A stretch of DNA of 63,942 bases, filler included, from Cercozoa sp. M6MM (taxonomy: Eukaryota > Protista > Endomyxa: Ascetosporea): the NCBI GenBank assembly GCA_040357565.1. It is 12 parts of 12 records of this genome, joined end to end, with 100 filler letters (N's around TTAATTAATTAA, not from the genome) between each part and the next. Parts side by side here need not be neighbours in the genome. Positions count along the whole stretch, not along the records: positions 1 to 2,480 come from JBDODJ010001758.1; 11 more parts are not named here. One strand, 5' to 3'. The number at the start of each line of letters is the position of its first letter. Position 1 is the first letter of the stretch. Made by a program: the position numbers and the translations under genes. The notes beneath the pieces are model-generated. The model did not search any database, was not told the DNA's origin, and saw only the letters and a list, made by a program, of their open reading frames with translations. Below are positions 1-2,013 of this stretch, piece after piece.

Positions 1-37
1 CTGCCCCCCCCCCACCCTTACCCCTCCCCTGCCCCAG

Positions 38-347
38 ATGGTGGATGCCGACGGTCGCAGTCTCGAGCGCGCTGTAACGGCGACAGCGCGGCTGTTGGGC
101 GGTGCTTTACCCCCCCCCTCCATTTTACCCCTCTAGTTTACCCCCTCCCCTGGCAGTATCGAAGCGATCGGTGCGACGCAGCGTGTGTCGCCGAGTGACG
201 GCGATTCCGTTTGCCGACTTGATGGAAAACAACAAGGCAGAAGGAAACAACAAAAACCAGGAAGAGGACCAGGAGGACGAGTATGACAGTCAGGTCACCA
301 TCGGCGCCAGCGACGACTCTTTCGACGATGACCTGCGACAGTACTAG
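38..347 (+). CDS. 3' end of a hypothetical protein with an acidic tail (last two exons)
   Basis: Exon MVDADGRSLERAVTATARLLG, then a C-rich GT-AG intron, then ...QEEDQEDEYDSQVTIGASDDSFDDDLRQY*. Confidence 0.6.
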
Positions 348-698: not shown

Positions 699-2013
699 TC
701 AGTTAAACCTGACGCCAGCAAGCACTTCACTCAGACGCTACACAGGAGACACGTGCACATGCATATGCGGTAATGTTCAATCGACTCTACCAGATCGTAG
801 GTGACAGTGGACGACGTGGCCGTCGTTTGCATCGATGTGCCTACCGGGGGGCAGGGGTCGGAGGTCAAGGTGTAGGGTTAAGGGGATAACGGAGCCCAGA
901 AGTACCTGCACCCGGAAGCTCCGCGAGCTTGGTCTCCTCGCCAAAAAACGTCGTCTCGATGCGTCCGTATGAAATGGCTAGGAGGGGTAGGGAGATAGGG
1001 GGTAGAAGGTAGGGGTAGAGGGGTAAGGAGGTAAGGGGTAAGGAGGTAAAGGGGGGGGGGTAAAGTTACAGAAGGACTCGACAATCTGGCCGGCAGGCCA
1101 GCGGCCACCACGGCGGTTCCTGGAAGAACCAGCACGCCTCGGGTCTTCATTCTCTTGCCCCTACAGGGAGGGGTATGGGGGTAATCTAGGGTAGCAATAT
1201 GGGAGGGGGTAAAGTGGGCTGTACAGAGGCACCGTTGGTCGAGAAGGACGTCAACGTGGCATTGTGCAGTCGGATACTCATCAACGACTCGTCCACTACC
1301 CCAAGGGGTGCCGCCCCCCCCCCCCCCCCCGCCCCCGCCCCAACAGGCCTACCATCATCCAGGTACAAAAACTCCATCTGCAAGAAGCCCGTGCCACCAG
1401 CGTCACTATGCATACATATAAGTATACATATAGACACAAACAAATAGACATACATATAAATATGTATATATGCATATGTGATAAGCTACGTCATCTCCTC
1501 GCTCTCACCCATCGGATCCGGCTCGTTCTGGCCGCGCTATGTGTAGGAGTAAGGGGCGGAAGGAGGAAGGGGGGTAAAGAAACACTACACGCTCAGCGGG
1601 CGTCAAGCCAGCGGCCGTGACATCCTTGCGCAGCACGCGACGCAAACCGGCCGACATCTGGGCGGGGGGGGGGGGGGGGAGGTAAAGGTGATAAAAAAGG
1701 GGGGGCCAGAAGACACAGAGGTGCGAGATACGATATAAGGCGAGGCGCCGTCCTGTACGTGCGTCACACTGACCTCGGACAGCGACGGGCGCGAGTTGCC
1801 CGAACGGCCAATGCCAAAGCTGAGCGAGGACACCGGGAAGTAGCCTTGCTCCTGTGCGTGACCAACAAAAAAGAATAAACATGACCTGCAAACATAGAAG
1901 ACACATAGTACCACCAGCTCCGGCGGCACCGGGTCGGACGTGTCCGGGCGCCGACTCGCGGCCTGCTGACCGATCTTCTCGTTGCCCACAAATCGCATCA
2001 AAATTCGACCCAT
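699..2013 (-). CDS. Hcp-like protein (type VI secretion tube / T6SS_HCP family), 10 exons, 237 aa
   Basis: Exons 2013-1912, 1851-1732, 1657-1589, 1536-1490, 1405-1353, 1295-1225, 1160-1070, 977-906, 840-791 and 737-699. All 9 introns are GTA..AG (52-92 nt) and the phases close to 714 nt. Protein motifs in Hcp order: ILMRF; YFPVSSLSFGIGRS; PSLSEVSVTHVQDGASPYI; LQMEFL; IRLHNATLTSFSTNG; ESFSISYGRIETTF; VTYDL. The last intron is the least certain; read-through would end YDLVESIEHYRICMCTCLLCSV*. Confidence 0.82.

Follow-up and report, generated by a model that had tools for sequence, protein, structure and literature searches.

A ten-exon gene of the amoeba Cercozoa sp. M6MM very probably encodes a divergent homolog of the bacterial tube protein Hcp

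We examined a window of 63,942 nucleotides from the genome of Cercozoa sp. M6MM (GCA_040357565.1), made up of parts of 12 records joined end to end. Its first contig (JBDODJ010001758.1, positions 1 to 2,480) carries the gene MHM6MM_009113, the coding region of which spans positions 699..2013 on the minus strand. The product is very probably a homolog of Hcp, the tube protein of the bacterial type VI secretion system (T6SS), encoded by a eukaryotic gene. We further consider it likely that MHM6MM_009113 is a nuclear gene of the host amoeba, Lemnamoeba sinaloensis, that derives from a bacterial Hcp1-type (TssD) subunit and whose product would serve as a cytoplasmic, sheath-less ring or tube or as a scaffold. 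What is new is the occurrence of this long-known family in another domain of life, in a gene of new structure and with no machine detected.

Strain M6MM is a marine amoeba from fish gills that belongs to Apofilosa (Rhizaria) and is now named L. sinaloensis (PMC11069148, PMC13746701). Its annotated proteins number 8,704, and a chromosome-level long-read assembly with six chromosomes has been published (PMC13746701). In its 23.6-Mb assembly of 2235 contigs, the contig carrying MHM6MM_009113 measures 2480 bp. The gene consists of ten exons and nine introns, opens with an ATG at 2013-2011, and closes with a TGA at 701-699; its exons total 714 nt, equal to the 237 codons of the protein plus the TGA. 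The introns are 60, 74, 52, 84, 57, 64, 92, 65, and 53 nt long (mean 67 nt), and all nine have GTA at the 5' end and CAG or TAG at the 3' end. Six are pyrimidine-rich on the sense strand, five of these with 42-54% C. The original prediction had placed a gene with nine GT-AG introns of consistent phase at 699-2013. These coordinates are exact, all ten peptide pieces quoted in that prediction were located on the minus strand, and the conceptual splice agrees letter for letter with a public protein.

This protein, which we call P0001, is MES1917381.1 (annotated as "hypothetical protein MHM6MM_009113", Cercozoa sp. M6MM, 237 amino acids), and the ten-exon conceptual translation is identical to it. 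We reached it by a word-index protein search with 40 residues of exon 2, which returned one protein, and the full-length protein analyses were run on the database record. The public gene models were produced with funannotate train, predict, and update with stranded, polyA-selected RNA-seq from the amoeba in culture (PMC11069148). The public splice model was thus made independently of the first reading of this sequence and of any knowledge of Hcp.

P0001 matches the Pfam family T6SS_HCP (PF05638) with 28.2 bits and an E value of 2.5e-6, above the gathering cut-off of 23.5 bits and in two collinear stretches. No other Pfam family is listed for P0001 at E values up to 10. The PF05638 assignment was already precomputed for P0001 in the protein collection, and the NCBI label reads "hypothetical". 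To build a comparison set, we started from E. coli O157 Hcp genes, scanned 151 genomes of that phylum with PF05638, and extracted the open frames from the 24 genomes with Hcp genes. Alignment A2, which contains 19 bacterial Hcp1-type and related proteins, represents bona fide Hcp1, because its profile matches PA0085/1Y12 at 3e-65. Alignment of P0001 with A2 by hhalign gave a probability of 92.8%, an E value of 3.9e-7, and a score of 48.0 over 107 columns (query 36-197, template 31-146). As a null, 40 residue shuffles scored 12.5 ± 2.5 (maximum 20.1) and the reversed sequence 12.5, which places P0001 about 14 standard deviations above the shuffles.

Comparison by protein language model points in the same direction. 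All 30 nearest clusters in ESM-Atlas are Hcp, with a top score of 0.94 and 199 of 256 features in common; with the Hcp clusters removed, the weak remainder consists of tail-tube families (gp19-like and Bacteroidota TssD clusters). When the comparison set was divided into subfamily profiles, a signal to P0001 came from the Hcp1-type and its diverse relatives only, at E ~1e-3, and the Vibrio-type, the enteroaggregative E. coli (EAEC) type, and a fourth Hcp type gave none. By sequence, P0001 falls within the wider PF05638 family as a divergent member and is not filed as an Hcp1 equivalog. The original prediction of an Hcp-family product with the conserved blocks in order is therefore upheld by the Pfam score above threshold, the hhalign margin over shuffles, and the uniformly Hcp neighbourhood in ESM-Atlas. 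In alignment A3, which combines P0001 with Hcp1-type proteins, the conserved Hcp blocks all follow one another in the same order along the exons. These blocks, from the N-terminus to the C-terminus, are as follows.

P0001 ILMRFVG, aligned with Hcp1 IFIKIGD
P0001 FPVSSLSFGIGR, aligned with Hcp1 IDVLNWSWGMAQ
P0001 SLSEVSVTHVQDGASPYIMSAG, aligned with Hcp1 NIQDLSLTKYVDKASPNLMMHC
P0001 DAGGTGFLQMEFL, aligned with Hcp1 KAGGESQVEYM
P0001 MSIRLHNATLTSFSTNGASG, aligned with Hcp1 VINLEEVLVTSLSTGGSGS
P0001 QIVESFSISYGRIETTF, aligned with Hcp1 RLTENVTLNFAQVMVDY
P0001 TVTYDL, aligned with Hcp1 IKFGWNI

We also modelled the monomer, the Hcp fold being a beta-barrel or sandwich with a single helix. AlphaFold supplied with A3 gave a model with a predicted local distance difference test score (pLDDT) of 71.7 and a predicted template modelling score (pTM) of 0.68; the core strands reach 80-92, and residues 85-118 fall below 50. 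A Foldseek search with this model matched solved Hcps at E values down to 1e-7. In VIA-align comparisons, solved Hcp chains were superimposed with Z scores of 12-15 over 114-152 residues at a root-mean-square deviation of 2.0-4.0 Å, and the tubes of pyocin, T4, the Photorhabdus virulence cassette (PVC), and other phages and extracellular contractile injection systems (eCIS) reached Z scores of 7-10.

The distribution of these blocks over the gene is given below, with all features on the minus strand.

Exon 1, 1912..2013, minus strand: residues 1-34, with the N-terminal beta strand ILMRFVG, resembling Hcp1 IFIKIGD, followed by a 17-residue insertion
Intron 1, 1852..1911, minus strand: 60 nt, GTACTA...CACAG, in frame and without a stop codon
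Exon 2, 1732..1851, minus strand: residues 35-74, with FPVSSLSFGIGR, resembling Hcp1 IDVLxWSWGxxQ, and SLSEVSVTHVQDGASPYI, resembling Hcp1 xxDLSxTKYxDKASPxL
Intron 2, 1658..1731, minus strand: 74 nt with 53% C on the sense strand; a homopolymer run of 16 bases lies at 1664-1679
Exon 3, 1589..1657, minus strand: residues 75-97, the remainder of the single helix and the beginning of the long insertion
Intron 3, 1537..1588, minus strand: 52 nt, GTAGTG...CATAG
Exon 4, 1490..1536, minus strand: residues 98-113, an acidic loop absent from bacterial Hcp, pLDDT <50
Intron 4, 1406..1489, minus strand: 84 nt, AT-rich and imperfectly microsatellite-like, (TA) with (CA) or (TG)
Exon 5, 1353..1405, minus strand: residues 113-131, with DAGGTGFLQMEFL, resembling Hcp1 KAGGxxQVEYL
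Intron 5, 1296..1352, minus strand: 57 nt with 65% G on the sense strand; a homopolymer run of 17 bases lies at 1314-1330
Exon 6, 1225..1295, minus strand: residues 131-154, with MSIRLHNATLTSFSTNGAS, resembling Hcp1 xIxLxEVLVTSxSTGGSG
Intron 6, 1161..1224, minus strand: 64 nt, C-rich
Exon 7, 1070..1160, minus strand: residues 155-185, a basic low-complexity insertion (net charge +3), then QIVESF, resembling Hcp1 RLTENV
Intron 7, 978..1069, minus strand: 92 nt, 54% C, with TTACCCC-like repeats
Exon 8, 906..977, minus strand: residues 185-209, with SISYGRIETTF, resembling Hcp1 TLNFAxVxVDY
Intron 8, 841..905, minus strand: 65 nt, C-rich
Exon 9, 791..840, minus strand: residues 209-225, with the C-terminal TVTYDL, resembling Hcp1 IKYGWNI
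Intron 9, 738..790, minus strand: 53 nt, retained in the second annotated isoform
Exon 10, 699..737, minus strand: residues 226-237 and the TGA stop

We evaluated three other splicing choices and rejected each of them. Skipping exon 4 brings a TGA into frame, an internal acceptor in exon 5 loses the conserved AGG...EF block, and an internal acceptor in exon 7 puts the conserved IVESF block out of frame. Intron 1 is free of stop codons, so that exons 1 and 2 lie in a single open frame of 136 amino acids (2013..1603) and retention of this intron would add 20 residues with the frame kept. The G-richness of intron 5 is the opposite of what is seen in the C-rich introns of the same gene. The homopolymer runs in introns 5 and 2 are of a type that is error-prone in short-read assemblies, and both are intronic. 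The microsatellite-like stretch of intron 4 fits the published remark that the M6MM genome is unusually rich in simple-sequence repeats.

A second annotated isoform, P0002 (244 amino acids), is P0001 with intron 9 kept and ends at an intronic stop codon. Its last 12 residues, the final Hcp strand included, are swapped for a 19-residue cysteine-rich tail. Extra isoforms in funannotate normally arise from transcript assemblies, and P0002 is thus indirect evidence of transcription and splicing. From this isoform pair, we infer that MHM6MM_009113 is probably transcribed and spliced.

We next consider whether the contig belongs to the amoeba. Genes of the published M6MM genome contain 13 introns on average, with a mean length of 82 bp and 99.5% GT/AG junctions, and the GC content is 52.8% (PMC11069148, PMC13746701); the intron number and size of MHM6MM_009113 fit these values. 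The GC content of the contig is 55.6% vs 52.8% for the genome. An intron of host actin (55 nt, GTAACT...TGCAG) is of the same donor type and size as those of MHM6MM_009113. Across the 23.6-Mb assembly, we counted 1078 copies of the C-rich decamer CCTTACCCCT vs 16 of its reversed control (~67-fold); the copies are present on all of the largest contigs and often form clusters within a few hundred bases (for example, C5:59328-59714 and C11:51785-51952). Both genes of the contig have C-rich stretches of this type on the sense strand of their introns (978-1069, 1161-1224, 1658-1731, and 1-37), and CCTTACCCCT resembles a family of simple repeats dispersed through introns of the M6MM genome. Five other host loci, 17 kb together, contained no TTACCCC motif. 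The likeness to housekeeping introns claimed in the original prediction was checked indirectly, through the actin donor and intron size, the decamer enrichment, and the five loci without TTACCCC. Its broader argument, that host-like introns speak against a bacterial contaminant, is backed by the CCTTACCCCT enrichment, the actin intron, and the published intron statistics. Actin-family matches in the assembly number 46 at the exon level (on C39, C49, C51, C70, C127, C129, C134, C202, C322, and others), consistent with the eleven reported actin paralogs.

The second gene of the contig is the convergent neighbour of MHM6MM_009113, and its 3' end reads as follows.

MHM6MM_009112, 3' end, 1..347, plus strand: 84-amino-acid partial hypothetical protein, cut by the contig edge, with its TAG stop at 345-347

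The partial protein has an acidic C-terminal tail, and no Pfam domain was found in its 84 amino acids. C-rich intron stretches lie on the gene's own sense strand at 1-37 and ~102-165, and the stop codons of the two genes are 351 bp apart.

The sequence of P0001 has diverged far from that of its bacterial counterparts. In A3, its identity to any sampled Hcp is 13-25%. Two word-index protein searches returned P0001 itself only, a PHROGs search gave no relevant match, and a metagenome scan for relatives produced 183 pattern matches, none of which was confirmed. The two E. coli O157 Hcps compared by BLASTP belong to other subfamilies, and P0001 accordingly matched neither of them significantly. 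Relative to Hcp1, P0001 carries insertions at approximately residues 10-34, 85-118 (net charge -5), 129-134, 155-178 (net charge +3), and 199-217. Beyond the last Hcp block, the protein continues for only about 10 residues, with no C-terminal toxin extension. The GC content at third codon positions (GC3) of MHM6MM_009113 is 0.72 vs 0.87 for host actin.

No Hcp paralog was found in the 23.6-Mb assembly, by a search of low sensitivity in so intron-rich a genome. Searched in six frames with PF05638 or the Hcp alignment, the assembly gave no match at all, MHM6MM_009113 itself included. We also looked for partner families of the injection machine, namely TssB/VipA, TssC/VipB, VgrG (Phage_GPD), TssE/gp25, PAAR, and phage sheath (PF05591, PF05943, PF05954, PF04965, PF05488, and PF04984), and nothing exceeded the cut-off in a six-frame profile search of the assembly, an approach that likewise misses MHM6MM_009113. 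These partner negatives are weak, because the search overlooks the gene itself in a genome with 13 introns per gene. Exon-wise six-frame screening is blind to MHM6MM_009113, and similar transfers in intron-rich protists are therefore likely under-counted.

Several observations weigh against the interpretation of P0001 as a eukaryotic Hcp. A phmmer search over 1.84 billion representative proteins returned P0001 itself and no relative, and phmmer against PDB sequences matched no chain. An NCBIfam search at E values up to 10 yielded no Hcp model, Hcp1 models included, and only a spurious 12-bit beta-lactamase match; of the two family profiles named in the original prediction, PF05638 was matched above threshold and the Hcp1-type TIGR03344 was not. 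Taken singly, the exons are non-significant. Exon 2 alone approaches significance (E 0.12 against PF05638, at profile positions 42-66, and E 0.0088 against our own Hcp profile among 102 six-frame segments), and the homology consequently rests on the splice model. Splice junctions and expression are predicted here from genomic DNA and annotation, and a contig of just 2480 bp leaves chromosomal linkage outside its reach. AlphaFold without an alignment gave an unusable model of P0001 (pLDDT 44.7). Because A3 consists of Hcps, the model driven by it indicates fold compatibility and is not independent proof. The comparison of the monomer with solved Hcps that was suggested with the original prediction gave matches for the A3-driven model, the fold of which is dictated by the alignment. 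Finally, the ~90 residues inserted in the loops of P0001 could disturb ring or tube packing, and its glycine-rich extended loop is ~12 residues shorter than that in Hcp1.

Could the resemblance to Hcp be a chance or convergent beta-rich pattern, created by the choice of splice sites in a protein that is no Hcp homolog? Such a coincidence would agree with the insignificant pairwise similarity to any single Hcp, with the subfamily-sized profiles reaching just E ~1e-3, and with the weakness of most exons on their own. It would also have to produce the identical splice model in an annotation pipeline blind to Hcp, a pass of the curated Pfam threshold with Hcp as the sole family at E up to 10, an hhalign score ~14 standard deviations over shuffles, and language-model neighbours that are all Hcp or other tail-tube families. 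A second concern is that the contig was mis-binned from another organism in the culture or sample. The contig is short, the public record is labelled a metagenome-assembled genome (MAG), and 0.6% of the assembly's genes were flagged by the NCBI contamination screen (PMC11069148). The nine spliceosomal introns exclude a bacterial source, however, and the culture comprises one eukaryote and two food bacteria (PMC13746701). The ~67-fold enrichment of CCTTACCCCT across large contigs of the same assembly, together with intron sizes and a donor type that match the host, makes a foreign eukaryote very unlikely. Chance resemblance and mis-binning are both unlikely, and we would give each of them only the slimmest of chances.

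Two further alternatives accept the homology and concern what the protein does. The transferred Hcp may be a neutral or decaying orphan, perhaps transcribed but with no selected function, in which the insertions reflect relaxed constraint. This gene appears to be a single copy, with no paralog detected in the assembly; no ortholog was found anywhere, and purifying selection is hence not measurable. Also consistent with decay are the ~90 residues of low-complexity insertions with low pLDDT and the lack of detected partner genes. However, the frame is intact over ten exons and nine phase-consistent introns, all core Hcp blocks are kept at an identity of 25% or less, and GC3 (0.72) has moved toward that of the host (actin, 0.87). 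Nine introns imply that the gene has been in the host for a long time, over which a 714-nt frame free of constraint should probably have been disrupted. We therefore regard a functionless orphan as improbable, albeit deserving of some weight. Alternatively, by analogy, a P0001 ring might act as a decoy or sink for the T6SS effectors of prey, protecting the bacterivorous amoeba through the effector-chaperone property of the Hcp lumen. Hcp rings are established to bind and stabilise effectors in their lumen, and a parallel exists in the domesticated T6SS amidase effectors of eukaryotes. The amoeba eats Gram-negative bacteria, including a Flammeovirga of Bacteroidota (PMC13746701). With no signal peptide, however, P0001 would meet effectors from the food vacuole only if they reached the cytosol, and the pairing of effector with Hcp is specific to cognate pairs. 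A decoy role thus seems quite unlikely.

We favour instead a retained Hcp-derived subunit that originated by horizontal transfer. Because eukaryotic relatives are not known and Hcp1 of the proteobacterial type comes nearest, we infer an old horizontal transfer as the most economical origin of MHM6MM_009113. The gain of nine introns and the host-like GC3 (0.72) suggest long residence in the host. Both the lack of any close relative among the 1.84 billion proteins and the full host intron architecture lend support to the old transfer put forward in the original prediction. In the sequence of events that we propose, a bacterial Hcp1-type (TssD) tube-subunit gene would have entered the amoeba nucleus by horizontal transfer, taken up nine spliceosomal introns in the style of the host, and shifted to a host-like codon use rich in GC3. 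Five hydrophilic insertions would have arisen in the loops of the protein, and the blocks of the Hcp beta-barrel core would all have stayed in order. P0001 appears to lack a signal peptide, judging from an N-terminus that aligns directly to Hcp strand 1, and we propose a cytoplasmic location for this reason. There, it may assemble, Hcp-like, into six-membered rings, possibly stacked into tubes. As no sheath, baseplate, or spike was detected, P0001 would function as a self-assembling scaffold or ring-shaped binding platform rather than as part of an injection machine. The case for retained ring formation is evenly poised in our judgment, and ordered tubes in vivo would be rather improbable.

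Lemnamoeba takes both its name and its generic definition from an unidentified ribbon in the cytoplasm, in which parallel tubules are densely packed; their diameter is not in the paper (PMC13746701). Conceivably, sheath-less stacked tubes of P0001, bundled by the outer acidic (residues 98-113) and basic (residues 155-178) loops, build this ribbon. The ribbon would then be a cytoskeleton-like organelle that a eukaryote makes out of a bacterial secretion-tube subunit. An Hcp tube measures ~9 nm across and has a 4-nm lumen; a microtubule measures 25 nm. We consider this a long shot, as the sole link between P0001 and the ribbon is their co-occurrence in one organism. P0001 is nonetheless a concrete molecular candidate for an unexplained ultrastructure of the same organism.

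Protists have commonly received bacterial enzymes by horizontal transfer. For the transfer and long retention of a structural subunit of an injection machine without the rest, we found no description in the open-access literature. A full-text search of open-access papers found no published description of a eukaryote-encoded Hcp, in agreement with the statement in the original prediction that no eukaryotic Hcp has been characterised. Neither genome paper (PMC11069148, PMC13746701) mentions Hcp or type VI secretion, and the supplements of PMC11069148 contain neither the gene nor Hcp. If P0001 still forms rings or tubes, it would show eukaryotic re-use of a self-assembling bacterial module and would provide an Hcp nanotube scaffold that has been re-engineered in nature and carries decorations on its loops.

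Among known systems, P0001 is most readily compared with Hcp1/TssD of the proteobacterial T6SS (PA0085, PDB 1Y12, PF05638), with which it has the ordered blocks in common from the N-terminal strand to the C-terminal Y/W-D/N-L. It is closer to this Hcp1-type branch than to Vibrio-type or EAEC-type Hcps. Unlike bacterial Hcp1, it is encoded in a eukaryotic nucleus by a gene with nine introns and is 237 amino acids long vs ~160. It also differs from Hcp1 in its five loop insertions (one acidic, one basic), its shortened glycine-rich loop, and the lack of detectable T6SS partners.

The tail tubes of contractile phages, pyocins, and eCIS (T4 gp19, PVC/Afp) have a beta-barrel fold class in common with the predicted model of P0001 (Z 7-10), whereas they show no sequence-profile match to it and their structural scores are clearly below those of Hcp. 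Like P0001, orphan or specialised bacterial Hcps, which lie outside the main T6SS clusters and include Hcp-ET fusions, are stand-alone genes without adjacent T6SS genes. Bacterial orphan Hcps, however, still serve a T6SS whose genes lie at another site in the genome; no such system was detected in the M6MM assembly. A further parallel is offered by Dae, the eukaryotic domesticated amidase effectors derived from bacterial T6SS Tae toxins. Dae are enzymes with stand-alone antibacterial activity, whereas P0001 is a structural subunit of a kind that normally depends on a dozen partner proteins. As with Dae, the gene encoding P0001 is a T6SS-associated bacterial gene that has become fixed in a eukaryote with a eukaryotic gene structure.

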